Part shown: piece after piece, positions 7,712-64,000 of the stretch
Position numbering within the stretch: position 1 is the stretch's first letter
Layout: every line of letters begins with the position of its first letter
Virus record (IMG/VR): IMGVR_UViG_3300037882_001770
Coordinates: 248,001 to 312,000 of that record
Strand: one strand, 5' to 3'
Length of the DNA: 64,000 nt
The notes under the pieces: generated by a model
What the model saw: the letters and a program-made list of their open reading frames with translations, nothing else
What the model was told of the DNA's origin: nothing
Databases searched by the model: none
Position numbers and translations under genes: made by a program

Positions 7712-8500
7712 ATGACCAATCATTATCAAACTCTAGGCGTTGACCGCAGCGCTTCCCCAGATGAAATTAAACGAGCTTATCGAAAGTTGGCCAGCCAGCA
7801 TCACCCCGACAAAGGTGGTGACACTAAAAAATTTCAAGAAATACAAACAGCATATGATGTACTAAGTGACCCGCAGAAAAAGTCTGCCTATGATAATCCT
7901 GCAGCCCAGACTTTTTCTGGGTTCGGTAATCAACCATTTGATTTTGATACTATTTTTGACATATTCGGTGCTAGATTTAATCATCCACATCAACAACCAC
8001 GTGGGCGCACACAGGCACGCATGAGTCTATGGATTACTCTATTAGACGCGGTGCAGGGCGGGAGACGTACTATCAGTATCGGCACTCAGCAAGGAACCCA
8101 GGCAGTAGAAATAGAAATTCCAATTGGGATCAATGACAGTGACTCTGTACAATATTCTGGTATTGCGCCAGGTGGTGGCGACTTGATAATAACGTATCGC
8201 ATACATAACAATCCTAAATGGCAACGCCAGGGATCTAATCTCATAACCGAACAAATGATCACTATCTGGGATTGCATACTAGGTGGTCAGACCATGTTGC
8301 GAGATATCGAAGGCAATCAATTAAACTTAACAGTTCCAGCAAGAACTCAGCCCGGCACAATGCTACGACTTCGTGGTCGCGGAATTCCACAGAGGCAAGG
8401 ACCAACTGGAGATCTTTTGGTTAAAATTGTTGCACACATACCTGACCAAATTGACCCTGAATTGCTGACTATGATTGAGCAAACTGGCAATAAAAACTAA
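7712..8500 (+). CDS. dnaJ: DnaJ-class chaperone without zinc finger (CbpA-like)
   Basis: J domain with HPD, G/F-rich linker, C-terminal GDL domains. Confidence 0.9.
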   Translation: MTNHYQTLGVDRSASPDEIKRAYRKLASQHHPDKGGDTKKFQEIQTAYDVLSDPQKKSAYDNPAAQTFSGFGNQPFDFDTIFDIFGARFNHPHQQPRGRTQARMSLWITLLDAVQGGRRTISIGTQQGTQAVEIEIPIGINDSDSVQYSGIAPGGGDLIITYRIHNNPKWQRQGSNLITEQMITIWDCILGGQTMLRDIEGNQLNLTVPARTQPGTMLRLRGRGIPQRQGPTGDLLVKIVAHIPDQIDPELLTMIEQTGNKN

Positions 8501-8509
8501 CTATATTAC

Positions 8510-8538
8510 TTGCACTTAAAAGTGATATAATATATAAT
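8510..8538 (+). promoter_or_regulatory. Sigma70-like promoter
   Basis: TTGCAC-N17-TATAAT upstream of clpA. Confidence 0.65.
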
Positions 8539-8568
8539 GTAACGTAGCAATCACCATTCAAGGAACTC

Positions 8569-14217: not shown

Positions 14218-17200
14218 ATGAATATTAATGAACTGGATTCTTTTCGTCTTTCTGATGCTGTAAAGTTTAATGATACATTAAACCCACGTCTGTGGGACAA
14301 GCAAGAAAAATTAAAGCCCGAAATCCGAAATCGTCTGTTGGAAATAGCCGACGATTTTCGTGAGTTTTTAGGCGTTACTAATTTACAACTCAAAGACATT
14401 ACAATATCAGGCTCTAATGCAGCCTATACCTACACCCCACACAGCGACATTGACCTGCACTTAGTGGTGGACCTGCCCGAAGCAGATCAAAACGAAGTGT
14501 ACCGTGAATTGTTTGACGCTAAAAAATATCAATACAATGATATGCACAATATCAAACTTGGTGGGCACGATGTAGAATTGTATGTTGAAAATGCCAACAA
14601 AAAACCAGTTAGTCAAGGCATATACAGTGTCTTGAACAACGAGTGGGTTGATATTCCGCAACGTAAAAAAGCCAATGTTGACGACATTAGCACTCGCAAC
14701 AAATACAATGATTTGAGTCAGCGCATTGATTCTGCTATTCGCAGTGGCGATCAAGAACAGATAGAAACACTCAGCAGCAAAATCAAAGAAATGCGTCAGA
14801 CTGGACTAGATCAGCACGGTGAATTTGGTCCAGAGAATTTGGCATTTAAAATGTTGCGTACTCAAGGCAAAATCAAAGAGCTATACGATGCTCGCAATGC
14901 GGCCAAAGACGAATTGTTGAGCTTGGATGAACGCAAAAAGAAACGCAAAAAGAAAGTTCGTTACGGATACGGCGGTTACTGGTATCCAGGCACAGCCTAT
15001 GCCGGTCAAGATCATTCAGCCGGAACCGAAGGTGGTGGTGGAGACGGTGGTGGTGGTGGTGAAAGCATCAGAGAATCTGCGGAAACCACCGACGAAGAAA
15101 TTCTTAAAGACTTTGTTGACTTTTGTGTCAAAGAATTAAAAATAGAAAATTTACCAATTATTAAATTACGACGTGATCCGCAATGGCCGGTGGTGCACAA
15201 AACCTTTGGGCGTTATAACGATGACAAAGAAATGCTGGAAGTGGCATTCGGTCAACGACACATTATGGATGTGCTTCGCACAGTGGCGCATGAGCTTACC
15301 CATCGGCATCAACACGAGCGTGAAGACGTTCCGGGTGATGCCGGTGAAACCGGCAGTCCTTACGAAAACGAAGCCAATGCCAGGGCCGGAGTACTCATGC
15401 GTGACTATGCCGGACTGCACCCAGAATATTTCAAAGTAGGACAAGCAGAAGAATCACACTGTGACGAAGTTGATGAAGGGCTCAAAGGTAAATTAGGTGC
15501 CATGGCTGCTGCGGCGTGTATCGCTGGCACCCCTGGATGTTCAACTACTGCTGGTGCTCTTAAAACTGCACAAGATGTTGGGCGCACTGCTCAGACTGTT
15601 AAGAACATGAGCCGTGCTGGTGTTCAAGATGAGCTTGGCCAAGAACTGCGTAATTTTCTTCGGGCCCAGGGCGGCGAACCTGGCAGTCAAAATCAAAGTA
15701 GATTGTACCAATTACAAAAGCGAGCCACACAAAAAGAATCAGCTAGTGGCTATATTCCCACAAAGAAACAAGCCAAAGATCCACGTTTCAGCATGGCACT
15801 TACACAGGATATCAAGCCTGGCCAACTGGGTAAAGAGGCAAACAAATTAAAATTAAAGACCGATCGTCAAGGCCATCCGCAAGTAGCTAGCCCCAATGGC
15901 TTGTTTGAAAAATTAAGTTTAGAATTAAACAAATTTAAAAAAGGTGAAACAGACGAAGACTATAGTCCAGACAATCCGCCCGGACCCGAGTTTAAGCCCA
16001 CTATGCCAGCAGGAACTCTGCGTGTAGATGTAAGCGATGTATATGATTGGTACAAATTAGGCCAACATATCAGCAACATGCAAGGCCTAGGCAAACATGA
16101 TTTTGGTCAAGGTCCTCCTGGTGCTATTGTTAGTTTTGGTGACGAAGATACCGAACATAAATTTATCCAAGATCTTGAAGCCACTGGGTTGGATATCACA
16201 GACATTGATCCTGCAGATCCAAAACAACCTGCTGGGATGCGCACCATCAAAACAGATCCTACATACAAGGTAGATGAAGTAATACAAGCTCCTGTAAACA
16301 AATATAAAGATGATAAACAGTATTATAATTTCATTATGGCCAAACATAAACTAGGCCGCCCATTAACACGTCAAGAACAAGAATATGTAAGAAGCTACAA
16401 AATGTTTAATCAACAAGTTGCAGAATCTGTTGACCAACTAGACGAAGTGGCCATGAGCCCCAGTGCCTTGGCCAAGTGGGCTCAAAGTCCAGAAGCCGAA
16501 GGCATACGTGCTGGTTTTGAAGCCGAACTGATCTTTCGCGATACTACCAATGACGACGATGATGATACCGAAATGGAGCCCGACTATGATTATGACGAAC
16601 GGCCTCGCAGTATATCGGATGTCATAGACTTTTTTAATGGTGGCGACTACGGTGGCCTGAGTGATAGACAAGAAGGTCGATTACAAGACGGTCTAGATCA
16701 ACAGTACATGGAGTGGCAAGACGAACGCATGTATGACGCCTGGCGTGACGAACGTGAAGACTTGATCCGTGAAGCCTGGTTGCGTGAAAAGCCCATGGTT
16801 GAACGTGTTCACGACTATCTAGTAGAAGGCATGGACATGGACGATCGAGAAGCTGATCGCATTCAAGCAGCCGGCGACGCGGCCCCACGCTTTACCAAAT
16901 TGAGTGACCAAGAGGCTTACAAACAAGCCAACCCAGATTACGCAACTTATTTGGAAGCCGATGAAGGCGCCGAAGAAATCCTACAAGAAGAAGTTGAGCA
17001 GACCATTGAGAAAGAAGATGGCTTCTACGACGAAGTCCTGGATGAATTCCGCGAGAATTTTTATACTGACGATGACTCTAGCTTCTTTCAGGATGTTGGG
17101 CTGGGTTACATGAGTGACATAGCGTCAGAATACAGCTTAGACTGGCCTTATCTGACTGGATCCGGCGGTGGCAACAACGGTGGACGTCGTGAGTGGGATG

Positions 17201-18855
17201 ATGTTGGCAACAGTTTACAAGATGCTATAGACATGCCGGTTCGAGTCAGCCAGGGCTATCACAGCATGCCACGCAAGGAAGGTCAATGGATTGTGGAACC
17301 TGACTCCAGTTTGAGTCCGGACGACAGAGAAGACTTTGGCTTGGAAATAGTAAGCCCACCCTTGCCCCTATTGACTGCACTGGAAAAACTGCAAGAAGTC
17401 ACCGACTGGGCCAACAATCCCTCAGAAGGCAATGCCTATACCAACAGCAGTACAGGCCTACACATGGGTGTCAGCGTGCCTTATAAAGGTGGCGATGTGG
17501 ACTACTTAAAACTGATCCTGTTCCTAGGTGACGAATATGTGTTGCAGAGTTTTGGACGTGAAGCTAATACATATACCAAATCAGCTATGAAAGCCTTCCG
17601 TGAAAACATTAGGTCAGGACGTGCTGATCCTGCAGGTGCCATGGCCCTGATGCGGAGCAACCTAATAGAGTTTGCCTATAGGGAAATACAAAAAGGTGTG
17701 GGTGGCGGCAAGTACACCAGTGCGCACATACAGGACGGCTATATTGAATTCCGTAGTGCTGGTGGTGACTGGTTGGCCGAGGAGTCAGCAGATCCCCAAA
17801 AGTTATCCAGTACCATGTTGCGCTATGCTAGAGCCATGCAGATAGCGGCCGACCCTAGTGCCGAACGTAGAGAGTTTGCCAAAAAGTTATACAAGATGGT
17901 GTCTCCCGAAGGTGATAGTCAACTAGCCCTGTTCAGTCAGTTTTCTGCAGGTGAGCTCACAGCAGAACAACTCAAGAAAAAGTGGGCTGAAAAGACCATT
18001 GGCACAGAAAAGAAAGCAAATCAACGCTGGAAGCTGTATCAAATGGCCGACGGCGGATGGCAACCGGTGTCAGGTGCTGAATGGAACGGCTACACTGAAG
18101 AGCAGGTCAAGAATGCTGTATGGAGCAAGTACGGGCGTGAAGCACTAGATTCCGGTGAATACAAGTTGGTCAACATGGGCGAGCAGGAGTGGGAAGTATA
18201 CCGTGTTGACACAGGTGAAACTCTCGAAGTGGTCAAAGGCAAGAGTCGAGGCGAAGTGGCTGATTCAGTGTATGACAAGTACGCAACCCAAAAGATTGGA
18301 TTCAATGTGCGTCCATATCAAGATCCTGCCACCATGACTCCAAGAGCCAAGTTGGCCAAGCGTATTGCAACCAAGAAACCAGAACCAAAACAAGTAGCCA
18401 ACCAAGCAACCAACGAGCGTGGCGTTCCTTATTGGGAAGTATATGACATTAGCAACGACCAGATTGTGATCCATACATTCCTAAGTGATACCGCAGCCGA
18501 CGCCAAAGTAGATGGAGCAAATTGGCTGAAAAGTTTTGGTGCTACACACCCCGAGTTGTTTGCAGTAAGACCCAAGATAAAAACCGCACAGGTCAAAGAT
18601 GTAGAACCTAATGTGGCACAGAACTTTGACAGTGCTCGAGACAGTGCCACCCTGCAGACCAACTTGCAAGGCAGGTCATCGCCGGATGCAACTGAAGTCC
18701 CTCGCAACTGGGAATTCGTAAATCGTATAAACGGTCAAGTTATTCATAATATGACAAATGCCAGCTATAACCAGGCCAATGTAGTGCAAGATAATCTTGA
18801 ACTTAGATATCCAGATGCAGACATATATTTGCGTAGTGTAGAGAGATCAAATTAA
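14218..18855 (+). CDS. Large polyvalent protein: Pol-beta nucleotidyltransferase + zincin metallopeptidase + amidoligase + repeated C-terminal modules
   Basis: ISGSNA...SDIDLHL (GS/DxD); VAHELTHRHQ...ENEANA; GFEAEL, EPDSSL, EIVSPP, STGLHMGVS, IEFRS. Confidence 0.75.
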   Translation: MNINELDSFRLSDAVKFNDTLNPRLWDKQEKLKPEIRNRLLEIADDFREFLGVTNLQLKDITISGSNAAYTYTPHSDIDLHLVVDLPEADQNEVYRELFDAKKYQYNDMHNIKLGGHDVELYVENANKKPVSQGIYSVLNNEWVDIPQRKKANVDDISTRNKYNDLSQRIDSAIRSGDQEQIETLSSKIKEMRQTGLDQHGEFGPENLAFKMLRTQGKIKELYDARNAAKDELLSLDERKKKRKKKVRYGYGGYWYPGTAYAGQDHSAGTEGGGGDGGGGGESIRESAETTDEEILKDFVDFCVKELKIENLPIIKLRRDPQWPVVHKTFGRYNDDKEMLEVAFGQRHIMDVLRTVAHELTHRHQHEREDVPGDAGETGSPYENEANARAGVLMRDYAGLHPEYFKVGQAEESHCDEVDEGLKGKLGAMAAAACIAGTPGCSTTAGALKTAQDVGRTAQTVKNMSRAGVQDELGQELRNFLRAQGGEPGSQNQSRLYQLQKRATQKESASGYIPTKKQAKDPRFSMALTQDIKPGQLGKEANKLKLKTDRQGHPQVASPNGLFEKLSLELNKFKKGETDEDYSPDNPPGPEFKPTMPAGTLRVDVSDVYDWYKLGQHISNMQGLGKHDFGQGPPGAIVSFGDEDTEHKFIQDLEATGLDITDIDPADPKQPAGMRTIKTDPTYKVDEVIQAPVNKYKDDKQYYNFIMAKHKLGRPLTRQEQEYVRSYKMFNQQVAESVDQLDEVAMSPSALAKWAQSPEAEGIRAGFEAELIFRDTTNDDDDDTEMEPDYDYDERPRSISDVIDFFNGGDYGGLSDRQEGRLQDGLDQQYMEWQDERMYDAWRDEREDLIREAWLREKPMVERVHDYLVEGMDMDDREADRIQAAGDAAPRFTKLSDQEAYKQANPDYATYLEADEGAEEILQEEVEQTIEKEDGFYDEVLDEFRENFYTDDDSSFFQDVGLGYMSDIASEYSLDWPYLTGSGGGNNGGRREWDDVGNSLQDAIDMPVRVSQGYHSMPRKEGQWIVEPDSSLSPDDREDFGLEIVSPPLPLLTALEKLQEVTDWANNPSEGNAYTNSSTGLHMGVSVPYKGGDVDYLKLILFLGDEYVLQSFGREANTYTKSAMKAFRENIRSGRADPAGAMALMRSNLIEFAYREIQKGVGGGKYTSAHIQDGYIEFRSAGGDWLAEESADPQKLSSTMLRYARAMQIAADPSAERREFAKKLYKMVSPEGDSQLALFSQFSAGELTAEQLKKKWAEKTIGTEKKANQRWKLYQMADGGWQPVSGAEWNGYTEEQVKNAVWSKYGREALDSGEYKLVNMGEQEWEVYRVDTGETLEVVKGKSRGEVADSVYDKYATQKIGFNVRPYQDPATMTPRAKLAKRIATKKPEPKQVANQATNERGVPYWEVYDISNDQIVIHTFLSDTAADAKVDGANWLKSFGATHPELFAVRPKIKTAQVKDVEPNVAQNFDSARDSATLQTNLQGRSSPDATEVPRNWEFVNRINGQVIHNMTNASYNQANVVQDNLELRYPDADIYLRSVERSN

Positions 18856-28387: not shown

Positions 28388-31045
28388 ATGAGTTATATTG
28401 ACGCACTTTTTGATCGTGAACACGATCGCATACATGTAGTTGAACGGCGAGATGGCAAGAGATGCTATCAGGAATATCCGGCCAACTACATTTTTTATTA
28501 CGAAGATCCCCGTGGCAAATTTCAAAGCATTTTTGGAACATCAGTCAGCAGATTCAGCACACGCAACAACAAAGAGTTTCGTAAAGAAATTCGCATACAG
28601 TCGGGCAAGAAATTATTTGAATCCGACATTAATCCTGTATTCCGCTGTCTTGAGGACAACTACAAAGGACAAGACGGTCCCAAGTTAAATGTAGCGTTCT
28701 TTGACATTGAGGTCGACTTTGACCCCGAACGTGGCTTTAGTCCAACAACAGATCCATTCAATGCTATCACTGCTATTTCAGTTTATCTGCAGTGGCTAGA
28801 GCAGATGGTCACTCTTGTTGTACCTCCAAAGCATATGAGTCGAGCTACTGCGGATGAAATTGCTCGAGAGTTTGAAAACTGCATTGTGTTTGAGCGAGAA
28901 GAAGAAATGTTAAAAACTTTCTTGGATCTTATCGAAGACGCCGATGCACTTTCAGGCTGGAATAGTGAAGGGTATGATATACCCTACACAATTAATCGTG
29001 TTACCCGTGTTCTGAGCAAAGATGACACCCGTAGATTTTGTTTATGGAACCAATATCCTAAAAAACGCATGTTTGAACGCTTTGGCGCAGAGAATGAAAC
29101 CTATGACTTAATTGGCCGCGTGCATATGGACTATATGCAACTGTATCGCAAATACACCTACGAAGAGCGTCATAGTTATAGTTTGGATGCTATTGCTGAA
29201 TACGAACTCCAAGAAACCAAGACTGTGTTTGAAGGCACCCTGGATCAACTGTACAACCAAAACTTCAAAAAGTTTATTGAATACAACAGGCAAGATACAA
29301 TGATTCTGGCCAAGCTAGATAAGAAATTAAAATTCTTAGACCTAGCGAACACACTGGCGCATGAAAACACTGTATTGCTACAAACTACCATGGGTGCTGT
29401 GGCTGTAACTGAGCAGGCCATTATCAATGAGGCACACGAACGTGGTATGGTTGTGCCCAATCGCAAGGAACGCTACAGTGATGAGGACACCCAGGCCGCC
29501 GGAGCTTATGTTGCCTTTCCAAAGAAAGGCATCCACGAATATGTAGGCTCGATAGACATCAATTCATTGTATCCCAGTGCCATTCGTGCGCTTAACATGG
29601 GACCCGAGACTATTGTGGGACAACTAAGACCCATAATGACCGAACGTTACATCAGCGACAAGATGCGTGGTGGGGCCAGCTTTGCAGCGGCGTGGGAAGG
29701 CTTGTTTGGCAGTTTAGAATATGAAGCGGTCATGGCCGCCGAGCCCGGTACAGAGATCACCATAGACTGGCAAGATGGTGAGGAGTCGGTCCATAGTGCG
29801 GCCGAAGTATGGAAGATAATTTTTGATAGTAACCACCCCTGGATGATCACTGCCAATGGCACTATCTTTACCTATGAAAAAGAAGCAGTTATTCCTGGCT
29901 TGCTAAAACGTTGGTATGCCGAACGTAAAGAGATGCAGGCCAAACTTAAAGAGTGTAAAAATGCGGAAGATGAAGAATATTGGGACAAGCGTCAACTTGT
30001 TAAAAAGATTAACCTCAACAGTCTCTATGGTGCTATTCTTAATCCTGGTTGCCGTTTCTTTGATAAGCGTATTGGTCAGTCCACAACTCTTACTGGTCGT
30101 GCCATTGCCCGGCACATGGATGCTTATGTAAACGAGTGTATCACAGGCAAATATGATCATGTAGGTGAGTCAATCATCTATGGTGACACTGATTCCTGCT
30201 ATTTTACAGCCTATCCGATTTTACAAAAAGAGATAGAAGCCGGTAACATGACATGGAATCGAGAAATTGCCGTACAACTGTATAATAGCATTTCTGATCA
30301 AGTTAACGATAGCTTTCCGGGCTTTATGGAGCAGGCATTCCATGTTCCACGCGAGATGGGCAATGTGATCAAAGGCGGTCGAGAGATTGTGGCCAGCAAA
30401 GGCTTGTTCATTACCAAAAAACGTTACGCTGTCATGTATTATGACAAAGAAAACAAGCGTGTGGACACACACGGTAGCCCGGGCAAGGTCAAAGCCATGG
30501 GTCTTGATCTCAAACGCAGTGATACTCCTAAGGTCATTCAAGAATTTCTAAGCGAAATCTTAAACGAGGTACTAGTGGGTGCCACACGTGAAAGTATTAT
30601 TGAAAAGATTCGCGAGTTCAAATACAAGTTCAAAGAGCGTCCAGGTTGGGAAAAAGGCAGCCCCAAGCGTGTAAATAATTTAACCAAGTATGGCAAGGAA
30701 GAAGAACGTCTAGGCAAAGCCAACATGCCGGGCCATGTCCGTGCAGCACTCAACTGGAACAATCTACGTAGAATGAATAGCGACAAGTACAGCATGCAGA
30801 TTGTCGACGGCATGAAAACTATTGTGTGTAAGTTAAAAGCTAATCCACTAGGTTGGACCAGCATAGGTTACCCCACTGATGAACAACATTTACCTCAATG
30901 GTTCAAAGAACTGCCGTTTGATGACAGTGAAATGGAAGCCACAGTAGTGGATCAAAAGATCAATAATCTGTTGGGAGTGCTGGAGTGGGATCTAGCAAGT
31001 GCCACCAACACAGAAAACACATTCCAAACCTTGTTTGAGTGGTAA
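28388..31045 (+). CDS. polB: Family B DNA polymerase (T4 gp43-like)
   Basis: Exo FDIE, GWNSEGYD, YNRQD; polymerase DINSLYPS, KINLNSLYG, YGDTDS. Confidence 0.97.
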   Translation: MSYIDALFDREHDRIHVVERRDGKRCYQEYPANYIFYYEDPRGKFQSIFGTSVSRFSTRNNKEFRKEIRIQSGKKLFESDINPVFRCLEDNYKGQDGPKLNVAFFDIEVDFDPERGFSPTTDPFNAITAISVYLQWLEQMVTLVVPPKHMSRATADEIAREFENCIVFEREEEMLKTFLDLIEDADALSGWNSEGYDIPYTINRVTRVLSKDDTRRFCLWNQYPKKRMFERFGAENETYDLIGRVHMDYMQLYRKYTYEERHSYSLDAIAEYELQETKTVFEGTLDQLYNQNFKKFIEYNRQDTMILAKLDKKLKFLDLANTLAHENTVLLQTTMGAVAVTEQAIINEAHERGMVVPNRKERYSDEDTQAAGAYVAFPKKGIHEYVGSIDINSLYPSAIRALNMGPETIVGQLRPIMTERYISDKMRGGASFAAAWEGLFGSLEYEAVMAAEPGTEITIDWQDGEESVHSAAEVWKIIFDSNHPWMITANGTIFTYEKEAVIPGLLKRWYAERKEMQAKLKECKNAEDEEYWDKRQLVKKINLNSLYGAILNPGCRFFDKRIGQSTTLTGRAIARHMDAYVNECITGKYDHVGESIIYGDTDSCYFTAYPILQKEIEAGNMTWNREIAVQLYNSISDQVNDSFPGFMEQAFHVPREMGNVIKGGREIVASKGLFITKKRYAVMYYDKENKRVDTHGSPGKVKAMGLDLKRSDTPKVIQEFLSEILNEVLVGATRESIIEKIREFKYKFKERPGWEKGSPKRVNNLTKYGKEEERLGKANMPGHVRAALNWNNLRRMNSDKYSMQIVDGMKTIVCKLKANPLGWTSIGYPTDEQHLPQWFKELPFDDSEMEATVVDQKINNLLGVLEWDLASATNTENTFQTLFEW

Positions 31046-56998: not shown

Positions 56999-57367
56999 GT
57001 GCGAGACAAAAAGAAATTAACTGCTGCTCTAGTTGAACAACTGGATCCGGAGTTGGGTCTTAACTGTGAGCATGCTTACAACACTTGGTGGCACAATCTT
57101 CGTAACAACGGCGGCATGCGCTTGACCGCTGCAGGATATCGGGCATTTCAAGATCTGTTAAAAATTGAATACTATGTGTTTAATTTAAAACCATTTGATA
57201 TCAATTCAAAATTGATAGTGTCTATGGATCGTAAATTACAACAACCCTACTACATTGTCACTAAAAAAATGATACCCGTACAGTTGATGTTTTTTGGCAG
57301 TCGCGAAGCAATGATGGTAAATTTATATGGCGATTTAAAAAAGTTCATTGACAATTACACTCCATAG
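56999..57367 (+). CDS. Hypothetical protein
   Basis: GTG start, 122 aa. Confidence 0.6.
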   Translation: MRDKKKLTAALVEQLDPELGLNCEHAYNTWWHNLRNNGGMRLTAAGYRAFQDLLKIEYYVFNLKPFDINSKLIVSMDRKLQQPYYIVTKKMIPVQLMFFGSREAMMVNLYGDLKKFIDNYTP

Positions 57368-57376
57368 TGTTACACT
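57348..57376 (+). promoter_or_regulatory. Sigma70-like promoter
   Basis: TTGACA-N17-TACACT. Confidence 0.55.
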
Positions 57377-57424
57377 ATCAACTGCGGTATTGTTATCATG
57401 CGCCGCCACCATTTTAGGAAAAAT

Positions 57425-58609
57425 ATGTACACCGTCGAACAAAATGACAAGCTGGGTTTTTATCAATTTGGAGATAAGAAATTCCACAACAAAGTAACTG
57501 CGTTAATTGAAGGAACCAAAGCCAACCAATTTCCAGAATGGAATTTCAACAAACAAGTATTTGATCAAACCAATTGGACTGTAGAACCCCCAGCAGGACT
57601 GCAAGAGTTGTATAGACTGCGGGCACTACAGTTGCGCGAACAGTACGACTATATTAGACTAGAGTGCAGTGGTGGCGGGGATTCGGCCACTGTGGCCTAC
57701 AGTTTTATCAACAACGGAATACACCTGGACGAAGTGATCTTTAGATATCCCAAAACTGGTGAAAAGAATGCCACTGATGATCCGTTCAATACCAAACCCG
57801 AAAATACCCTCAGTGAATTTCGCTTTGCAGCCAAGCCCCTGTTGCAGTGGATTGCAGACCATAGTCCTGCTACCAAAATTGTCATACACGACTACAGTGA
57901 GGACATGCTCAAAAGCCAACACGATGAATCCTGGGTGTTTAAAACTAGAGATTATTTTCAGCCCGGGCACCCATTCAAACACACAGTAGATGCCTTGGAT
58001 GATCACAAGCGTACCTTGGATCAAGGGCGCAGGGTCTGCATGCTGTGGGGTGTTGACAAGCCCAAGATCTGCATCAAAGACAAAAAATGGTATGTGTATT
58101 TTATGGACGTGCAGGCCAATGCAGCCAATCCCGACACGGCGGGCTACAGCAACATCACCAATGAATATTTCTTCTGGACTCCGGATCTGCCCGAGCTGTT
58201 GGTCAAACAAGCACACATGATCAAGAACTGGTTTGACCTCGAAAGCAACAAGCATCTACAACACTTGGTACGCTGGCCCAACTACAGCTTTACACAACGC
58301 ACAGCCTTTGAACACATTATCAAACCGTTGATTTATCCTGACTATGATCAGACCACATTTCAAACTGCCAAACCCACCAACAGCTTTTACAACGAAATGG
58401 ATCATTGGTTTTATACCAATTTTCAAGAAACACATGCGTACCGCACATGGAAAGCTGGACTCAATTTCTTGACCAGCAATATAGATCCCAAGTATTTCAA
58501 CAATGAAATGGGACGTCCTGTGGGCTTTGTGGGCTTTATCAGTCCGTTTTATTATCTGGGTGATGCACATTTTGAAGATCCCGGTACCAATTTACACTTT
58601 AAATTTTAA
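57425..58609 (+). CDS. PP-loop adenine nucleotide alpha-hydrolase-fold protein
   Basis: IRLECSGGGDSATV (SGGxDS), WGVDKP; start after AGGA RBS. Confidence 0.7.
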   Translation: MYTVEQNDKLGFYQFGDKKFHNKVTALIEGTKANQFPEWNFNKQVFDQTNWTVEPPAGLQELYRLRALQLREQYDYIRLECSGGGDSATVAYSFINNGIHLDEVIFRYPKTGEKNATDDPFNTKPENTLSEFRFAAKPLLQWIADHSPATKIVIHDYSEDMLKSQHDESWVFKTRDYFQPGHPFKHTVDALDDHKRTLDQGRRVCMLWGVDKPKICIKDKKWYVYFMDVQANAANPDTAGYSNITNEYFFWTPDLPELLVKQAHMIKNWFDLESNKHLQHLVRWPNYSFTQRTAFEHIIKPLIYPDYDQTTFQTAKPTNSFYNEMDHWFYTNFQETHAYRTWKAGLNFLTSNIDPKYFNNEMGRPVGFVGFISPFYYLGDAHFEDPGTNLHFKF

Positions 58610-58611
58610 CA

Positions 58612-59910
58612 ATGGAGTTGTTGATCTTATTAACAGCTGGGTTAGTGACCGGCATACTGATTGGTTTGTTCCCGGTATTTCCTGTGTACGCTGGTGCATT
58701 TATTCTTTACTTGACCAGCGGCCTGTGGACTCCAGAACAGATGCTGTTGTTTTGGATTGTGGCCAGCATCGGCAGCCAATTTTTTGCCAGTGTTAGTGCT
58801 ATTACACTGGGCATACCAGGCGATGCCAGCAGTTTGGTCTATATAAAAGATGTTAAAAAATTATCACTGTTGGAACGCAATCAACTGCTGTGGTTGACCA
58901 GTCGTGGTAGTTTAATCAGCGGCATAATAAGTTTGGTCTTGGTCTGGGTGTTGTACTATGTGTACACCGCAACCGGTCAAACATTTTTGTTTTCCATTGA
59001 AGCCAAATTGCTATTACTGTATTCAGTTATATTTTTCTTTATTGTCACTAGCCAGCAAAAAATACTCACACTACTGTTAAGTATATTTGGTGTGTTGATT
59101 TCTCCGCAAAACAATTACAGTTTGCCCAGCGAATGGTTTCATTTTTCAACCTTGTTTCAAAATACCACATTCTTTATGCTGATATTGGCATTAATGATGA
59201 TTCCCGACATGCTGAATTATCGCACACTACAAATAGATAATAAAAATCAATATTCTACAATTCCGTCGCAGATGCCCTGGTGGTTGATATTAAAAAATTC
59301 CATACTGGGCTGTTTGGTAGGCTTGATCCCAGGCCCGGCTGCAGAGGTGGCTGCATCAGCTGCTTATTCGTCTACTAGAACAAAAAATACCAGTTTAAAA
59401 ATTGTAGCTGCCGAAACTGCCAATAATCCCGGGGTGGTCATGATGATCTTGCCGTTGTTGTTGTTGGGTCTGCCTTTTACTTCCAGCAGTTTGATAGTGA
59501 GCAATATCATGGACAGCAAAATGGTCGCGTTGCCCGAGCTGGCCAGATCAGCCAGCACAATTGTCACAGGATTTACTGTGTTTGATGTCATGATCATTAT
59601 GGCTGTCATGACCACAGTCATTTATTATGCACTGAGTATACAGTTTATTAATGTTTATACCCGACTGGTCAGTTCTGCATATGACAAATTTAAATGGGCA
59701 ATGATTGTGCTGGTGTTGGGTATGGTCGGCGCCGACATATACATACAAGAAATATCCTGGCTGGCCTATGCAACTCTGCTAATTTTTTATATTGCTGTAG
59801 GTCAGGTACTAAGGCACTTTCGCGTCAGCCCAGTGCCCATGATATTTGTGTATTTGTTAGGAGATCAGTTGATCTGGGCCACCGGCCAATTTTTAGCCAT
59901 ACACTTTTGA
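58612..59910 (+). CDS. TctA-like tripartite tricarboxylate transporter membrane subunit
   Basis: Multiple TM helices; ITLGIPGD, GLIPGPAA, AAETANN motifs. Confidence 0.75.
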   Translation: MELLILLTAGLVTGILIGLFPVFPVYAGAFILYLTSGLWTPEQMLLFWIVASIGSQFFASVSAITLGIPGDASSLVYIKDVKKLSLLERNQLLWLTSRGSLISGIISLVLVWVLYYVYTATGQTFLFSIEAKLLLLYSVIFFFIVTSQQKILTLLLSIFGVLISPQNNYSLPSEWFHFSTLFQNTTFFMLILALMMIPDMLNYRTLQIDNKNQYSTIPSQMPWWLILKNSILGCLVGLIPGPAAEVAASAAYSSTRTKNTSLKIVAAETANNPGVVMMILPLLLLGLPFTSSSLIVSNIMDSKMVALPELARSASTIVTGFTVFDVMIIMAVMTTVIYYALSIQFINVYTRLVSSAYDKFKWAMIVLVLGMVGADIYIQEISWLAYATLLIFYIAVGQVLRHFRVSPVPMIFVYLLGDQLIWATGQFLAIHF

Positions 59911-59913
59911 CCG

Positions 59914-59921
59914 TATAAATA
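59914..59921 (+). promoter_or_regulatory. T4-type late promoter TATAAATA
   Basis: Perfect TATAAATA 5 nt upstream of the structured element. Confidence 0.65.
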
Positions 59922-59926
59922 TTCCT

Positions 59927-60038
59927 GCAACGCCGGGTTCTTCCGACGTGGGATTTCAACAAGACGCTTGACATACGGATGTCTTTACTGTATTATTAAT
60001 ACAGAACGCCTGCCCTGAGTAGAGCTCTTCTACTAGCA
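59927..60038 (+). ncRNA. Structured leader element, copy 1 (riboswitch/cis-RNA candidate)
   Basis: Shares GCAACGCCGGG, CCGACGT, GACGCTT, TTTACT, AGAACGCC with copy 2; three stems covary. Confidence 0.7.
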
Positions 60039-60067
60039 TTAAAATTCATTAACTTAAAGGAAATTAA

Positions 60068-60898
60068 ATGAAACTTCGATTCATCGTGGCCTCTATATTG
60101 GCCGTAGCTGTATCCACCGCATCCGCTGATGTGATTGTCAACAACAGCAACAAAGCCAGTCCTGGCACAGTGGTAGCAAAAACATTTGAAACAGCAGTGG
60201 GCACCAACAAGATTGACTTCTTTCAAGCCAATACGTGTGAAGAGGCACAAGCAAAATTTCAGTCTAGTAAAAATGCAGTAATGATTTACAATGCCGACGT
60301 TGGAATTGCAGCCCTGGGCAAAGGATTAAAATGCCCACTGACAGCCAAACCAGAACAAACTGTGTTCATTGGAAAAAGCTATTTAAAAGTGTGTACCAGT
60401 GCCAAAGCGCCCAAAACACTAGAACAGGCCAAAACCATTGGCGCTGCCAGCGTTATTCTGAGCAAAGGACTTGTTGAGGACTACAACAGCAATGGATTAA
60501 ATCTCAAAGGTGTTCCCTACGGTGGCAGCGTAGGTGTATTGGGCGGACTGATCGCCGGTGACATCGATGTGGGCTTTGTGGCCAGCAGCATTGCCGATCC
60601 TGCAATCGAATCCGGACAAATCACTTGTGCATTGAGTACCGATCCGCGTCGTGCAGATTATGTGGCCAACAAGTACAAGTTAAAAGTACCGTCCATGCCC
60701 ATTGTCAAGGTATTCTACACCAACACCGACAATCCTGCATTTATTTCTGAGTTGCAAGCTGCCGTAAAGAAAGAAGAGTTTCAGGCATTTTTAGCAAAAG
60801 CCAAATACGATGATGTCAAAACTGGTAAAATTACACAAAAAGACCTTGATGCAGTGCAAAACTACATTACAGATTCGTATAACTACTACTGGAAATGA
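60068..60898 (+). CDS. Periplasmic substrate-binding protein (TctC/Bug-like)
   Basis: Signal peptide ending ASA-D; GVPYGGS...LIAGDIDVGF; follows the TctA-like gene. Confidence 0.6.
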   Translation: MKLRFIVASILAVAVSTASADVIVNNSNKASPGTVVAKTFETAVGTNKIDFFQANTCEEAQAKFQSSKNAVMIYNADVGIAALGKGLKCPLTAKPEQTVFIGKSYLKVCTSAKAPKTLEQAKTIGAASVILSKGLVEDYNSNGLNLKGVPYGGSVGVLGGLIAGDIDVGFVASSIADPAIESGQITCALSTDPRRADYVANKYKLKVPSMPIVKVFYTNTDNPAFISELQAAVKKEEFQAFLAKAKYDDVKTGKITQKDLDAVQNYITDSYNYYWK

Positions 60899-60919
60899 TC
60901 TAGGAGATAAATAAAACTA

Positions 60920-61025
60920 GCAACGCCGGGTCCCGACGTCGGAATTAACTGACGCTTACAGTAGATACTGTTTTACTAGTGTGATACACTAGAACGCCAG
61001 CCGTAGCAGAATTGTTCTGCAAGCA
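60920..61025 (+). ncRNA. Structured leader element, copy 2
   Basis: Same conserved motifs and stem positions as 59927-60038; TAAATA at 60908-60913. Confidence 0.7.
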
Positions 61026-61054
61026 ACAAATTAAATTAAACAGGAGTTCATTAA

Positions 61055-62011
61055 ATGAGCAAAACTACTAAAATCCGTTGGGTAATCGCACACGAGCCAT
61101 TGAGCCTTTTTGTACGTGCGGCGCATGATTTTGAAAAAGAAATCAACGCTCAACAAACAGCAGAAAAAATTGAAATTGAAGTAATGACACTGAGCGAATA
61201 CAGTGCCAAATATAACAACGGTGTTATGGTCACCAAACACGATTTGTTAGATTTGATGGAACAGGGCAAAATTGAAATGAGCCAAATGTACACCACTTGG
61301 TTGGCTGAACATTATGAAAATGATTTCTTGGCTTTTGAAATGCCTTACATTTTCAGCGATCACGAGCATGCTAGCCGTGTGTTGGAAGGCGAAGTTGGTG
61401 AAACACTATTGGCCAAACTCACAGACAACAGCAATGTACGTGGACTTGCTTACACATACTCAGGCGGTTTCCGTTGTTTGGGTGTAAACAAGCCAGTGAG
61501 CACCCTAGCTGATTTAACTGGTGAAAAACTACGTTCAAACCGTAACCCGGTGGGCCGTGCAGTGATCCGCACTATGAGTGGTGTTGAGCCATTTATTTGC
61601 GAAACTGAAGAAGCACGGGAACACGTTGCTCGTGGTGATTGCAACGGCAATGACACAGTTTACAGCCGTATCTATCCATTGAGCCAAAATGACGTAATTC
61701 AGTCAGTGGTAGACAGCAAGCACAGCTTGTTCCTGACCACAATGATCATTGGTGATCGCTTCTGGGACAGCCTCAGCTCAGAAGTACGTGCTGTGATCAA
61801 GACGGCTGCTATCCAAGCTGGTCGCAACGAAAGAACCACTACCATTGAAGATGGTCAGCAAGCTCGCGCTCGTTTATTAAGCGAAGGCAAGACAGTGTAT
61901 GAGCCTACCGCAGAAGAAACAGCGGCAATGAAAGCTCGCATGCAGGTAGTATATGATGAATTTGAAAATTCATTTAGCGACAATCTAATCAATCGTATTA
62001 AAACAGCCTAA
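61055..62011 (+). CDS. TRAP DctP-like substrate-binding protein without a signal peptide
   Basis: GKIEMS, FEMPYIF, GGFR, DLTGEKLRS, LFLTTMII; charged, non-hydrophobic N-terminus. Confidence 0.8.
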   Translation: MSKTTKIRWVIAHEPLSLFVRAAHDFEKEINAQQTAEKIEIEVMTLSEYSAKYNNGVMVTKHDLLDLMEQGKIEMSQMYTTWLAEHYENDFLAFEMPYIFSDHEHASRVLEGEVGETLLAKLTDNSNVRGLAYTYSGGFRCLGVNKPVSTLADLTGEKLRSNRNPVGRAVIRTMSGVEPFICETEEAREHVARGDCNGNDTVYSRIYPLSQNDVIQSVVDSKHSLFLTTMIIGDRFWDSLSSEVRAVIKTAAIQAGRNERTTTIEDGQQARARLLSEGKTVYEPTAEETAAMKARMQVVYDEFENSFSDNLINRIKTA

Positions 62012-62029
62012 TTGGCATGAAGTATCAAT

Positions 62030-62063
62030 AAAACAAGCACTGCTGGTCAGTGCTTGTTTTTTG
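62030..62063 (+). terminator. Rho-independent terminator
   Basis: AAAACAAGCACT/AGTGCTTGTTTT inverted repeat with T-run. Confidence 0.8.
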
Positions 62064-62128
62064 TCATAAATTATGGCACTGCTGGTTGCGCCATTAAATA
62101 GTAATATCATCTTTATTCTTTTTCCATT

Positions 62129-63412
62129 ATGAATTCATCTAAATCTTCTACTACACGTACAGTAGCGGCCAGCACCGTCGGCACCATTTTTGAATGGTAC
62201 GACTTTGTTATTTTTGGCTTGGCCACTGTGTTGGTTTTTAATAAACTATTTTTTCCCAATATAGATCCAGCATTGGCCTTGGTAGTTTCAATGTTGGCCT
62301 ATGCTGTGGGCATTGTGGCCAGACCCTTGGGTGGCCTAATTTACGGTGCCATCGGCGATCGCTACGGGCGCCGACGCATGTTGGTGGCCACCATGCTGAT
62401 CATGGGTGCCAGTACCTTTGCTATAGGTCTGTTGCCTACCTATAGCACCATTGGCGTATGGGCTCCTATCATGCTAATTGTGCTGCGTATTGTACAGGGC
62501 ATTGGCATCGGCGGTGAATGGGGCGGAGCCAGTGTGATGATTCAAGAATCTGCACCAGATCATCAGCGTGGCTTTTATGCCAGTTTTATACAGACCGGAC
62601 TACCTGCGGGCATGCTGATGGCATCGGGTGTGTTTGCTGCGTTGACCACTGTGTTGACCGAAGCTGAATTCCTAAGCTGGGGATGGCGTATTCCATTCTT
62701 ATTGAGTGCAGTGTTGGTGCTGATAGGCACAGCAATTCGTTATCAAATTCCAGAAACTCCGGTCTTTTTAGCCATGAAAAATGTTTCTAAGTCGCCCATA
62801 CGCGATCTTTTTGTCAAGCATCCCAAGACCTTGTTAAAAGGCATCGGTCTTAAAATAACAGAAAGTGTGTGGTTCTTTATAGTCACAGGATTTATAGTAG
62901 GCTATGCTGTTACCAATTTTGCTATACCTCGTGGAGATCTTTTAAAGATAATCATGGTCAGCAATGCCATCAGTATAGTGTGGGCCCTGGCCATGGGCTA
63001 TCTGTCAGACCAGATAGGTCGCAGAGCCATTTTCTTTTTTGGTGCGGCATTTACTGTCGTAATGCCATTTCCTATCTTTTACTTGGTCAGCACCGGAGAT
63101 TTTTATCTAATTGCAGTGGCCATGATTGCGGGGCAATGCATTGGCAGTACCACTATGTTTGCTGTGTTGAGCTCGTATCTACCTGAAATATTCCCAGCTG
63201 AAGTTCGTAGCACAGGAGCCAGCTTGAGTTTTCAAATAGGAGCAGCCATAACCGGAGGCCTGGTACCGGTATTAGCGGCCTGGGCGGTGGGTGTTTGGGG
63301 CACCAATTATGCAGTGTCCTTATTGATGATGCTGTTTGGCTTGATCACATTTGTCACTGTGCTCAATACCAAAGAAACTTATCAAACATCAATGACGCAA
63401 TTAAATGATTAA
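62129..63412 (+). CDS. MFS transporter, metabolite:H+ symporter family
   Basis: GTIFEWYDF, RPLGG...GDRYGRR, GGEWGGA, SDQIGRR, PEIFP..VRSTG. Confidence 0.92.
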   Translation: MNSSKSSTTRTVAASTVGTIFEWYDFVIFGLATVLVFNKLFFPNIDPALALVVSMLAYAVGIVARPLGGLIYGAIGDRYGRRRMLVATMLIMGASTFAIGLLPTYSTIGVWAPIMLIVLRIVQGIGIGGEWGGASVMIQESAPDHQRGFYASFIQTGLPAGMLMASGVFAALTTVLTEAEFLSWGWRIPFLLSAVLVLIGTAIRYQIPETPVFLAMKNVSKSPIRDLFVKHPKTLLKGIGLKITESVWFFIVTGFIVGYAVTNFAIPRGDLLKIIMVSNAISIVWALAMGYLSDQIGRRAIFFFGAAFTVVMPFPIFYLVSTGDFYLIAVAMIAGQCIGSTTMFAVLSSYLPEIFPAEVRSTGASLSFQIGAAITGGLVPVLAAWAVGVWGTNYAVSLLMMLFGLITFVTVLNTKETYQTSMTQLND

Positions 63413-64000
63413 TACCTTTGCAGATAAACCTGAATTCATTGGTACAGATCCTAGACAGCGTAGACCTGCCCATTGGCAATACACTGTGACCGCTGAATTA
63501 ATGACTCAGCGTCATGATGTGTTTTTTAAAAAGGCCCAGTTGGCAGGCGCCAGAGTATTGGACCTGGGATCGTGTTGTGCAGCCACTGGCGCATGGGTGT
63601 TAGATCGTGGTGCAGATCACTATACCGGAGTTGAATTACAAGAAAAATTCGTTGCCAGTGCTAGAAACAATTTACAACAGTATTATCCAGCCGATCGCTG
63701 GAGCATAGTACAAAGTGATCTAGAACAGTACATAGACCGTTGTGAACAGGAGTTTGACGTAGTGTTACTGGCCGGTGTGTTACACTGTTTGTTTGATTAT
63801 CATAAAATACTGCGCAAATTGACCAGTATTTCACAACAGATCATCATTGAATGTTTCCACCCGTATAATGGTCTTCGAGATCTTTATCCAGAACTTGACA
63901 ATGATCAGCGTTATGCATTGTGTCAGCAGTTGAGTCTGGCCCAGATAGCGGCTGAAACCGGCACCGCAGGTGAAAATGGTGGCAGTTGGGTATTTGACGG
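63405..64000 (+). CDS. Class I SAM-dependent methyltransferase, 3' truncated (missing from ORF track)
   Basis: My translation from ATG 63405: VLDLGSCCAATG, TGVE, FDVVLLAGVLH; open to the window end. Confidence 0.8.
   Translation, partial: MINTFADKPEFIGTDPRQRRPAHWQYTVTAELMTQRHDVFFKKAQLAGARVLDLGSCCAATGAWVLDRGADHYTGVELQEKFVASARNNLQQYYPADRWSIVQSDLEQYIDRCEQEFDVVLLAGVLHCLFDYHKILRKLTSISQQIIIECFHPYNGLRDLYPELDNDQRYALCQQLSLAQIAAETGTAGENGGSWVFD

Follow-up and report, generated by a model that had tools for sequence, protein, structure and literature searches.

A phage-borne set of predicted solute-uptake genes with a new structured RNA leader

Main findings

An uncultured freshwater jumbo phage (IMG/VR record IMGVR_UViG_3300037882_001770, 317,493 bp) carries a conserved, phage-specific set of solute-uptake genes, which encode a TctA-type membrane carrier, a secreted TctC-type binding protein, and an unusual, predicted cytoplasmic DctP-type binding protein. 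The two binding-protein genes are each preceded by a previously undescribed structured RNA leader that is found over 100 times in viral metagenomes. The window analyzed here is a stretch of 64,000 nucleotides, positions 248,001 to 312,000 of that record. An earlier note, made from the sequence alone, had described in it an island of four genes at 58612–63412 (TctA-like, TctC-like, DctP-like, and MFS), three of them with an upstream TAAATA motif, without TctB or DctQ/DctM partners in the window and with a dedicated RNA leader. This observation is confirmed: the four open reading frames are intact and lie on the + strand, their family assignments are right, the boxes and the leader are real, and the partners are absent. 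The accompanying interpretation, a single late-expressed uptake island for carboxylate-type solutes, is only partly supported, since the island consists of two units.

Organization of the region

The elements of the region, in order, are as follows.

57348–57376, +: sigma-70-like promoter (TTGACA, 17 nt, TACACT, with TG), 22 nt before the PP-loop gene
57398–58609, +: PP-loop (SGGxDS) ATP-pyrophosphatase-fold enzyme, 403 aa
58612–59910, +: TctA-like inner-membrane carrier, 432 aa
59914–59921, +: TATAAATA, late-promoter-like box (TAAATA at 59916), 5 nt before leader 1
59927–60038, +: structured RNA leader, copy 1, from GCAACGCC to AGCA
60068–60898, +: divergent TctC/Bug-type periplasmic solute-binding protein, 276 aa, with an N-terminal signal peptide (MKLRFIVASILAVAVSTASA)
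60908–60913, +: TAAATA late-promoter-like box (within GATAAATA), 6 nt before leader 2
60920–61025, +: structured RNA leader, copy 2
61055–62011, +: DctP-family binding protein without a signal peptide, 318 aa
62034–62063, +: intrinsic terminator (9-bp stem, 5-nt loop, T6)
62095–62100, +: TAAATA box 29 nt before the MFS gene, with no structured leader
62129–63412, +: MFS protein resembling MHS-family metabolite:H+ symporters, 427 aa

The first unit starts with the PP-loop gene, which was not included in the island as first described, but which ends 2 nt before the start codon of the TctA-like gene and belongs with it. The unit is closed by the terminator at 62034–62063 (fold energy –17.5 kcal/mol, z –4.8), which separates it from the MFS gene. 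The sigma-70-like element upstream of the PP-loop gene (10 of 12 matches) is a consensus match only; it is a possible early or middle promoter for the PP-loop–TctA pair, with no TAAATA box present there.

The TAAATA boxes are more frequent than expected by chance. On the + strand, the motif occurs at 2.88 per kb in intergenic DNA against 0.25 per kb in coding DNA, a 12-fold enrichment, and at 0.78 per kb on the other strand. The box is also invariant in 24 aligned homologous leaders, although only one of the three boxes in the island is the full TATAAATA. These properties agree with a T4-type late promoter; a gp55-type late sigma factor was not searched for, and late timing is inferred, as only two freshwater DNA runs hold parts of the region and no RNA run does.

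Proteins of the first unit

The TctA-like protein matches Pfam PF01970 (E 4e-29, 101.9 bits against a cut-off of 28.9) over profile positions 1–422 of 423, as for the large 12-TM-type subunit of tripartite tricarboxylate transporters (TTT). It represents a phage-type short form, whereas the canonical TctA proteins in the candidate host genus comprise 500–510 aa. The metagenome-only clade to which it belongs is 38–91% identical, on contigs up to 340 kb, while named cellular TctA are at most 28% identical. The phage-type TctA of 428–441 aa was absent from 30 other genomes of the candidate host genus.

The 276-aa protein gave no hit in searches of Pfam, NCBIfam, or PHROGs, and the Pfam TctC model itself scores only 12.7 bits (E 0.008), below its threshold of 27 bits. 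It is nevertheless TctC-like, as the earlier note had guessed unaided. Its AF2 model (pLDDT 90.7) has TctC/Bug proteins as its top ~16 Foldseek PDB hits, such as MatC (6hke) at E 9e-13, and a profile of the family hits a TctC chain at E 0.0098. The signal peptide is visible in the sequence.

The DctP-like protein matches Pfam PF03480 (E 5e-41, 141.3 bits) and NF037995 (110 bits against a cut-off of 50). It aligns over about 250 residues with solved DctP proteins, among them 4p47, and the conserved Arg of the K-L/I-R strand aligns with theirs. However, it is not a periplasmic TRAP receptor, as it lacks a signal peptide here and in all relatives examined. The open reading frame begins with MSKTTKIRWVIAHEP, which aligns with the mature N terminus of DctP proteins and is shared by relatives (ten show the same), and no start further upstream is possible. 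In two lineages the protein is split into two ORFs at the same residue, once in permuted gene order.

The PP-loop enzyme belongs to a virus-only family (its Atlas clusters are 100% viral), with the SGG.D motif invariant in 18 homologs; a paralog lies at genome positions 312842–313939, outside the window. Its AF2 model has a pLDDT of 81.5, but the Foldseek matches (carbapenam and beta-lactam synthetase, AsnB, MnmA, GMP synthase, NadE, and N-acetyl-sugar amidotransferase) are weak (E 6e-4 to 1e-2, TM about 0.3).

Profile searches of the whole record gave no match to TctB (PF07331, at E <= 1), DctQ, or DctM (PF04290 and PF06808). The small ORFs next to the module in relatives have no hydrophobic segments on reading their sequences, although TctB is poorly conserved and a very divergent one cannot be excluded.

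Conservation and phage restriction

The TctA-like, TctC-like, and DctP-like genes are adjacent on many independent contigs of 8 to 338 kb, next to genes of DNA ligase, PhoH, MazG, and clamp loader, and closer relatives keep the PP-loop gene directly abutting TctA. The set is rare among phages, as none of 50,697 GenBank phage records encodes a relative of the TctA-like, TctC-like, or PP-loop proteins, and it has no close cellular relatives. Two of the conditions named in advance as fatal to the interpretation, decay of the genes in relatives and a host–phage chimera, could be examined, and neither applies: dN/dS is 0.05–0.11 (0.05 for the TctC-like gene, 0.07–0.11 for the DctP-like gene, and 0.10 for the MFS gene), and the same gene set sits among phage genes on independent contigs. 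A third, the absence of expression during infection, could not be examined for want of RNA data.

The phage is a T4-polymerase-type virus, distantly related to Atu_ph07, Phosso, and the 121Q group. Its host may be a freshwater betaproteobacterium such as Polynucleobacter. Genomes of the genus of the one MAG that holds a leader copy carry 3 to more than 56 TctC genes, but only 1–2 canonical TctA, which is the orphan Bug-receptor arrangement that a phage TctC could exploit.

A structured RNA leader

The two leaders (~110 nt) lie in two homologous ~155-nt intergenic regions, share 79% column identity (mean over alignment columns), and are the only ones in the 317-kb genome. Their hairpin sequences differ, but pairing is kept. 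The helices are P0, P1, a long-range CGG/CCG helix, P2, P3, and P4, and the MFE fold of copy 1 reproduces all of them except P2. Covariation supports the structure: 25 pairs in five helices are 93% paired, against 33–54% when the pairing partners are slid, 18 of the 25 pairs show double-sided changes, and the covariation score is 0.518 against 0.08–0.13, with 0 of 500 shuffles reaching it. The presence of G-U pairs on the sense strand argues for RNA rather than DNA structure. In half of the leaders, however, the 5' arm of P2 reads TTGACA, and leader 1 gives an 11 of 12 sigma-70 promoter match, so part of the conservation could be at the DNA level.

A covariance model scores the two copies at 140 and 130 bits, finds no third copy in this region, and gives 83 further hits of 72–149 bits on viral contigs. 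We counted 90 unique copies in viral contigs. There was one true copy among 185,579 prokaryote species genomes. None of the 4227 Rfam families matches the leaders at E <= 1, either in the window region or in 7 further loci. Each copy examined starts just after a TAAATA box. By first downstream gene, the 90 unique leaders precede canonical TctC (29), PP-loop (11), DctP-like (10), TauD/TfdA (7), TctA (5), porin (5), and DUF2061 (3) genes, with hexapeptide acyltransferase, desaturase-like, and halogenase-like genes also encountered. While the conserved structure is as expected of a riboswitch aptamer, no expression platform is recognized: P4 has no U-tract, no terminator follows it, and a test for pairing between the 5' end and the ribosome-binding region was negative. 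With ligand binding not assayed, these observations do not decide whether the leader is a riboswitch.

The second unit

The MFS gene is the first gene of a separate conserved operon with two SAM-methyltransferase genes, the first of which starts at 63405 and overlaps it by 8 nt. Relatives at 74–96% identity always show the order MFS–methyltransferase–methyltransferase, and the nearest named cellular homologs, at about 48–50% identity, are from Burkholderiales. The protein matches TIGR00883 (metabolite:H+ symporter) at E 8e-116, but its 387 bits fall short of the curated cut-off of 443, whereas Pfam Sugar_tr and MFS_1 are above theirs, so that the scores do not settle its membership in the MHS family.

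Interpretation

We consider it somewhat more likely than not that the first unit is a phage-specific derivative of the tripartite tricarboxylate transporter, forming a late-expressed, RNA-controlled module for uptake and processing of an organic acid. The 2-nt spacing of the PP-loop and TctA-like genes suggests coupled translation, and the two genes that follow are separately promoted. In this view, late in infection the phage would make its own periplasmic receptor and carrier to pull an organic acid into the cell, and the receptor may also feed the TctAB of the host. The cytoplasmic DctP-like protein would capture the solute, the PP-loop enzyme would activate its carboxylate with ATP for amidation or ligation, and the leader would act in cis on the mRNA to tune this expression, as a riboswitch-like sensor or a protein operator. 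The second unit would be an independent import-and-modify operon with its own promoter. The analysis itself establishes the gene identities, folds (from predicted models), conservation, purifying selection, phage restriction, RNA structure, promoter-box enrichment, and the terminator, whereas the direction of transport, the substrate, the timing of expression, the effector of the leader, and the protein contacts are inferences. A working carrier without TctB has to be assumed, binding-protein-dependent uptake was not measured, and a complex prediction for the TctA-like and TctC-like proteins gave no verdict. A cytoplasmic DctP-family protein has no known characterized precedent, and the role assigned to it is a guess.

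It is possible, though we hold it less likely, that the leader is not a metabolite sensor but the binding site of a phage or host protein (a translational operator like those of T4 RegA, gp32, or gp43), or a 5' stabilizer or processing element of a subset of late accessory mRNAs, the transporter genes then being simply late genes. The functionally mixed downstream genes fit a general late-mRNA element as well as a metabolite sensor, no terminator or anti-SD platform was found, the leader would always sit at the very 5' end of a late transcript, and four repeats of an ACGYC-like word (AACGCC, GACGUC, GACGCU, AACGCC) are located next to helices, as protein-binding repeats might be. On the other hand, the many invariant unpaired nucleotides in the junctions of a multi-helix fold resemble aptamer cores, most downstream genes share an uptake theme (porin, periplasmic receptor, carrier, cytoplasmic binder, enzyme), and only 2 of about 48 intergenic TAAATA boxes in this genome carry the leader, which is therefore not a general late-mRNA feature.

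An outward-directed unit, or one that is not a transporter at all, appears doubtful. In such an arrangement, the DctP-like protein would bind a product of the neighboring biosynthetic genes and pass it to TctA for export to the periplasmic TctC-like protein, or the binding proteins would act as sensors or sequestering proteins. The missing signal peptide in every homolog examined, the split into two ORFs, which is odd for a classical receptor, the absence of TctB, and a neighborhood rich in tailoring enzymes (PP-loop, methyltransferases, radical SAM, and in relatives ketoacyl synthase and halogenase) speak for it. However, all characterized TTT and TRAP systems are binding-protein-dependent importers, and the leader regulon includes outer-membrane porins and many canonical secreted TctC receptors, which fits uptake better. 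Most leader-bearing phages carry a TctC receptor but no TctA, which makes sense only if the receptor feeds a host importer. Very unlikely is a recent capture of host genes or an assembly chimera without phage function, even though the region lies 5–10 kb from the end of a linear, 89%-complete contig, the MFS has Burkholderiales homologs, and one related contig was binned into a Polynucleobacter MAG. GC content is uniform across the window (0.42–0.45), phage-family genes lie on both sides, including the PP-loop paralog downstream, the leader was not found in 120 other genomes of that genus, and the recurrence of the module on viral contigs, the divergence from cellular TctA, and the strongly purifying selection contradict this reading.

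Comparison with known systems

In common with the tripartite tricarboxylate transporters (TctABC of Salmonella, Bug-family receptors of Bordetella and other Burkholderiales), the unit has a full-length TctA domain protein and a secreted receptor with best structural matches to TctC/Bug proteins that keeps the VPY-G-S...L.A...G.iD motif region, the genes being adjacent and on the same strand; the likely host group is known for many orphan TctC receptors. It differs in the lack of TctB, in a TctA about 70 residues shorter than that of the host, in a receptor below the Pfam TctC threshold, in being phage-borne, in its coupling to a PP-loop enzyme and a cytoplasmic DctP-like protein, and in the late promoter and structured leader of the receptor gene. 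The TRAP receptors of the DctP/SiaP family share with the DctP-like protein a clear family sequence and the Arg-bearing strand, but the phage protein has neither the signal peptide nor the DctQ and DctM partners, and is split in some relatives.

Among phage auxiliary uptake genes, which the earlier note described as usually phosphate or ammonium related, the cyanophage PstS phosphate receptor similarly is a periplasmic receptor supplied by a virus that can work with host uptake machinery during infection; here, a carrier is supplied as well. A tctA domain hit on viral contigs, with its role unknown, was noted before in SUP05 viruses (PMC4164917). In the present case the inferred substrate class is organic acid rather than phosphate, and a whole multi-gene module with its own RNA control element is conserved across a large clade of jumbo phages rather than seen as a single domain hit. 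The leader resembles riboswitches and other structured 5' leaders of transporter genes in being a 5'-terminal, multi-helix RNA of about 110 nt with invariant junction nucleotides and covarying stems, placed before receptor, transporter, and enzyme genes, but it matches no Rfam family, is almost exclusively viral, is fused to a T4-type late promoter box, and has no recognized expression platform or known ligand. Finally, compared with the MHS family of MFS transporters (ShiA shikimate, KgtP, ProP), the MFS protein shows a full-length match to TIGR00883, below the curated cut-off, and its best equivalog-level resemblance to the shikimate transporter (322 bits against a cut-off of 538), so the substrate is not assignable from these scores, and it is phage-borne, with its stop overlapping the start of the first of the two methyltransferase genes here and also in the relatives L134–L136.

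Genomic Setting

The window belongs to a linear IMG/VR virus record of 317,493 bp, estimated to be 89% complete, in which it covers bases 248001-312000. Almost all of its genes are on the + strand, and the GC content is even, at 0.38-0.47. The DNA polymerase (28388-31045) is of the T4 family (phrog_262) and is 46-50% identical to those of Sinorhizobium phage Phosso and Agrobacterium phage Atu_ph07, and about 42% identical to those of the 121Q group; the record therefore represents an uncultured jumbo phage. Parts of the region were found only in freshwater or unlabelled metagenome DNA runs, whereas no RNA run was found, and reads of the two weakly matching DNA runs were not pursued, since contigs built from them cannot show expression. 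Other genes of the window include a 759-aa ATP-dependent protease homolog (8569-10848; phrog_4871, E 3e-237), a 1545-aa protein (14218-18855) whose only match is a 230-residue N-terminal PHROG of unknown function, and a 72-aa DUF2061 gene (4665-4820, 73 bits). A single call by ARAGORN in the genome, a permuted tmRNA at 314202-314640 with an implausible tag, was taken to be a false positive and was not used.

Genes of the Proposed Uptake Region

The observation made in the earlier note, that four transporter-related genes lie side by side, three of them behind TAAATA motifs, and without TctB or DctQ/DctM partners in the window, was confirmed. The following genes are present:

58612-59910, full-length TctA-domain protein (PF01970, E 4e-29)
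60068-60898, 276-aa TctC-like protein, with no hit in Pfam, NCBIfam or PHROGs
61055-62011, DctP-family protein (PF03480, E 5e-41)
62129-63412, MFS of the metabolite:H+ symporter family (TIGR00883, E 8e-116, below its curated cut-off)

The note had called the product of 60068-60898 TctC-like from the sequence alone, and this assignment was tested. An alignment of 28 homologs yielded an AlphaFold model with pLDDT 90.7, whose best ~16 PDB matches are all TctC/Bug receptors, namely MatC, Bug27, BugD, TphC, and the terephthalate-binding protein. The family profile hits a TctC chain at E 0.0098, over the shared VPY-G-S motif region, although the Pfam TctC model gives only a sub-threshold score of 12.7 bits inside this ORF. 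The protein has a typical signal peptide. An exhaustive protein search was not run, as the family scans and the word search had settled the identities.

TAAATA boxes stand at 59916, 60908, and 62095. TctB, DctQ, and DctM are missing from the whole record, and not only from the window, as the note had stated. The 141-152-aa ORFs found next to the module in distant relatives were considered as TctB candidates, but were rejected, since they have no hydrophobic segments on reading their sequences. A complex prediction for the TctA-like protein with the mature TctC-like protein returned a score of 0.00 and no verdict, which is evidence neither for nor against binding.

Division of the Region into Two Units

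The interpretation offered in the note, a single late-expressed island of organic-solute uptake genes, is only partly supported, as the region consists of two units. A perfect 9-bp hairpin followed by T6 lies at 62034-62063, directly after the DctP-like gene (-17.5 kcal/mol, z -4.8). The closest relatives of the MFS (74-96% identity) sit on phage-like contigs, where the MFS is always followed by the same two SAM-methyltransferase genes, with no TctA nearby. This three-gene operon (window 62129-64000 and genome 311405-312855, the latter being 8406-9855 of locus L002, which covers this end of the record) is conserved in the related phage contigs L134, L135, and L136, and in L134 it is preceded by a gene of the PP-loop family. 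In the window, the first methyltransferase gene overlaps the MFS stop by 8 nt. The next-best MFS homologs, at about 48-50% identity, are Burkholderiales proteins.

On the other side, a gene encoding a 403-aa protein (57398-58609) ends 2 nt before TctA and keeps that position in relatives. In the distant group, however, the genes before TctA are not PP-loop genes, but one or two copies of a 308-321-aa protein with no Pfam hit on record (8934-9860 in contig locus L003 and 8097-9997 in L004).

Beyond the window (genome 312824-317493; L002:9825-14494) lie a PP-loop paralog of 381 aa, downstream of the methyltransferases, and an HPDD-motif protein that looks like a PIG-L deacetylase by eye. Of the genes in this segment, only the PP-loop paralog was tested. 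Several unassigned ORFs follow, and a Cys-rich ORF at the contig end on the - strand may be radical-SAM/SPASM-like.

Conservation and Phage Restriction of Unit 1

A search for related loci with the TctA-like protein alone found nothing in viral contigs, and relatives were reached instead through a word search and inspection of individual contigs. The word search revealed a metagenome-only clade of 430-446-aa TctA-like proteins, 38-91% identical, on contigs up to 340 kb, whereas named cellular TctA proteins are at most 28% identical. The 276-aa protein has a matching clade on the same contigs. In these contigs, the TctA-like, TctC-like, and DctP-like genes are found side by side among genes for DNA ligase, PhoH, MazG, clamp loader, peroxiredoxin, and lysozyme, although in the more distant group the DctP-like gene is on the opposite strand. 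None of 50,697 GenBank phage records encodes a relative of the TctA-like, TctC-like, or 403-aa proteins, and a search of GenBank phages with the leader DNA also found nothing; the hits obtained there with the DctP-like and MFS proteins were mislabelled bacterial contigs or prophage flanks.

Pairwise dN/dS against relatives is 0.05 for the TctC-like gene, 0.07-0.11 for the DctP-like gene, and 0.10 for the MFS, while for TctA and the 403-aa gene synonymous sites are saturated at dN 0.10-0.20. The genes are therefore functional, and two of the three conditions that the note had set out in advance as counting against its reading, pseudogenisation and a host-phage chimera, do not apply, as the genes are neither in decay nor a chimera.

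The DctP-like protein is not a periplasmic receptor. Its ORF cannot begin further upstream, and its first residues, MSKTTKIRWVIAHEP, correspond to the mature start of DctP proteins; all ten relatives that were aligned begin in the same way. The Arg-bearing K-L-R strand aligns with that of solved DctP proteins. In two lineages, the gene is split into two ORFs at the same residue (about 157), with the C-terminal half starting with MKIRT. In contig L007 (5924-6881) the halves overlap, whereas in contigs L010-L012 (2658-4042 in L011) they are in permuted order, the C-terminal half coming first, followed by a DUF2061 gene and a leader copy, and then by the N-terminal half. This looks like a tolerated split rather than decay.

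The 403-aa protein carries an invariant SGG.D PP-loop motif. Its profile found no meaningful match among PDB sequences, and only a fold search placed it: the model (pLDDT 81.5) weakly matches carbapenam and beta-lactam synthetases, asparagine synthetase B, MnmA, GMP synthase, NAD synthetase, and an N-acetyl-sugar amidotransferase. Most of these enzymes adenylate a substrate carboxyl or carbonyl group before amide (or lactam) formation, whereas MnmA thiolates tRNA. Atlas look-alikes of the 403-aa protein are all viral.

The RNA Leader

The 157-nt gaps before the TctC-like and DctP-like genes, which contain the leader copies at 59927-60038 and 60920-61025, are homologous to each other. Column identity averages 79%, and the hairpins differ in sequence but keep their pairing. 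These are the only two copies in the genome.

The distribution of the leader was examined by pattern scans of IMG/VR, filtered with nhmmer and a covariance model. The first pattern was too loose, as only about 20 of its 118 hits were real after filtering with nhmmer, whereas a tighter pattern gave almost only true copies. In total, 90 unique copies were obtained, many of them on contigs of 320-350 kb. The same pattern found 29 places in 185,579 prokaryote species genomes, only one of which is a true copy; it lies on a 7-kb contig binned into an uncultured Polynucleobacter MAG, directly before a phage-type TctA gene. The leader is lacking in 120 other genomes of that genus, and no Rfam family matches it.

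The alignment shows an invariant TAAATA box 6-9 nt upstream of the leader. Helix P1 is ACGcCGG...CCGaCGU, with its outer A/G covarying with U/C, a long-range CGG/CCG helix encloses hairpins P2 and P3, and P4 follows. The joining sequences, GACGUCGG, GACGCUU, UUUAC, GAACGCC..CCGU, and AGCA, are invariant. In the alignment, 93% of cells are paired, against 33-54% when the partners are slid, 18 of 25 pairs show compensatory changes, and no shuffle out of 500 reaches the covariation score. The single-sequence folding z-scores of the leaders are unremarkable (-0.6 and -1.6), and the case for structure rests on covariation. A short closing helix (5' GC with 3' GC) appears in the MFE fold and covaries in two sequences. 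Pairing of the 5' end of the leader with the ribosome-binding region, tested as a possible expression platform, was rejected, as the observed mean duplex energy was -1.53 kcal/mol against -1.59 kcal/mol for permuted partners, and no expression platform was found. The presence of G-U pairs on the sense strand argues for RNA.

The genes that follow the leader are listed below.

Table. First downstream gene of the 90 unique leaders, with number of leaders
Canonical Pfam-positive TctC receptor: 29
PP-loop family: 11
DctP-like: 10
TauD/TfdA dioxygenase: 7
TctA-like: 5
Gram-negative porin: 5
Hexapeptide acyltransferase: 4
DUF2061: 3
Divergent TctC-like: 2
Desaturase-, halogenase-, and hydroxylase-like: singles or pairs

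The commonest layout is leader, then TctC, then PP-loop. Most of these phages therefore bring only a receptor and an enzyme, whereas the phage described here also brings a carrier. In other phages (contig loci L174:8801-10000, L184:8528-9700, L172:414-1454, and L175:384-2021), the same leader directly precedes Gram-negative porins, TauD/TfdA dioxygenases, and a tryptophan-halogenase-like gene, and the RNA therefore marks a regulon wider than the transporter genes.

Candidate Host

Sampled genomes of the candidate host genus hold 3 to more than 56 TctC genes, but only 1-2 canonical 500-aa TctA, which is the arrangement in which an extra receptor can plug into the host carrier. One MAG, labelled uncultured Polynucleobacter (G001), holds three short contigs (C45, C91, and C94; L145/L249) with phage-type 428-441-aa TctA genes, besides its canonical TctA; these are probably binned phage fragments, and they are the only host hint from binning. 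Partial matches to betaproteobacterial tmRNA (RF01850, E 7.5e-12 and 8.6e-4), cut by the contig ends, are found next to leader-bearing genes in two contigs (L207:1412-1534 and L249:2597-2722). Together with the Burkholderiales affinity of the MFS they point the same way for the host, although this assignment remains tentative. In addition, tRNA arrays lie beside leaders in contigs L169, L172, and L119.

Promoters

TAAATA is 12 times denser in + strand intergenic DNA than in coding DNA and is strand-biased. It is fixed in position before every aligned leader, which fits a T4-style late promoter whose transcript starts at the first helix of the leader. One caveat is that the 5' arm of P2 reads TTGACA in half of the leaders, and that leader 1 scores 11 of 12 as a sigma-70 promoter (59968-59996; TTGACA, 17 nt, TATTAT), with the match lying across P2 and P3; in contigs L007 and L116 the same region reads, by eye, TTGACA, 18 nt, TATAAT. 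The PP-loop-TctA pair has no TAAATA box, and has instead a sigma-70-like match at 57348-57376.

Interpretation and Comparison with Known Systems

We take unit 1 to be a late-expressed, RNA-controlled uptake-and-capture system for an organic acid, whereas unit 2 would be a separate import-and-methylate operon. The gene content, conservation, and leader structure reported here underlie this reading, while expression, the substrate, the direction of transport, the working of TctA without TctB, the role of the cytoplasmic DctP-like protein, and what the leader senses were not shown and enter it by inference. We can also speculate, although we consider this doubtful, that the leader is a new, essentially phage-only riboswitch class that senses the imported metabolite or a host-state signal. 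It would then coordinate a virus-encoded uptake route spanning the whole envelope, from a porin through a periplasmic TctC receptor and a TctB-less TctA carrier to a cytoplasmic DctP-type acceptor, which would be a new role for that fold, and finally to a PP-loop ligase that traps the solute.

Three features of the set are of wider interest: a TctA carrier that appears to work without TctB, a DctP-family protein that is predicted to have moved to the cytoplasm and can even be split into two genes, and a new structured RNA family, abundant in viral metagenomes, that marks a regulon of porins, receptors, carriers, and tailoring enzymes. The RNA gives a direct handle for finding what these phages import or sense during infection, and adds a candidate to the short list of virus-specific cis-regulatory RNAs, while the module offers a natural test of whether TctB is dispensable for TTT transport.

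We found no paper that mentions both the tripartite tricarboxylate transporter and jumbo phages, and none that describes this leader. A viral tctA domain hit, with unknown role, was noted once before, in SUP05 viruses (PMC4164917). Phage-borne uptake genes are known mainly for phosphate, and for single components, whereas here a large clade of uncultured freshwater jumbo phages carries a self-contained and strongly conserved set of genes for the inferred uptake of an organic acid.
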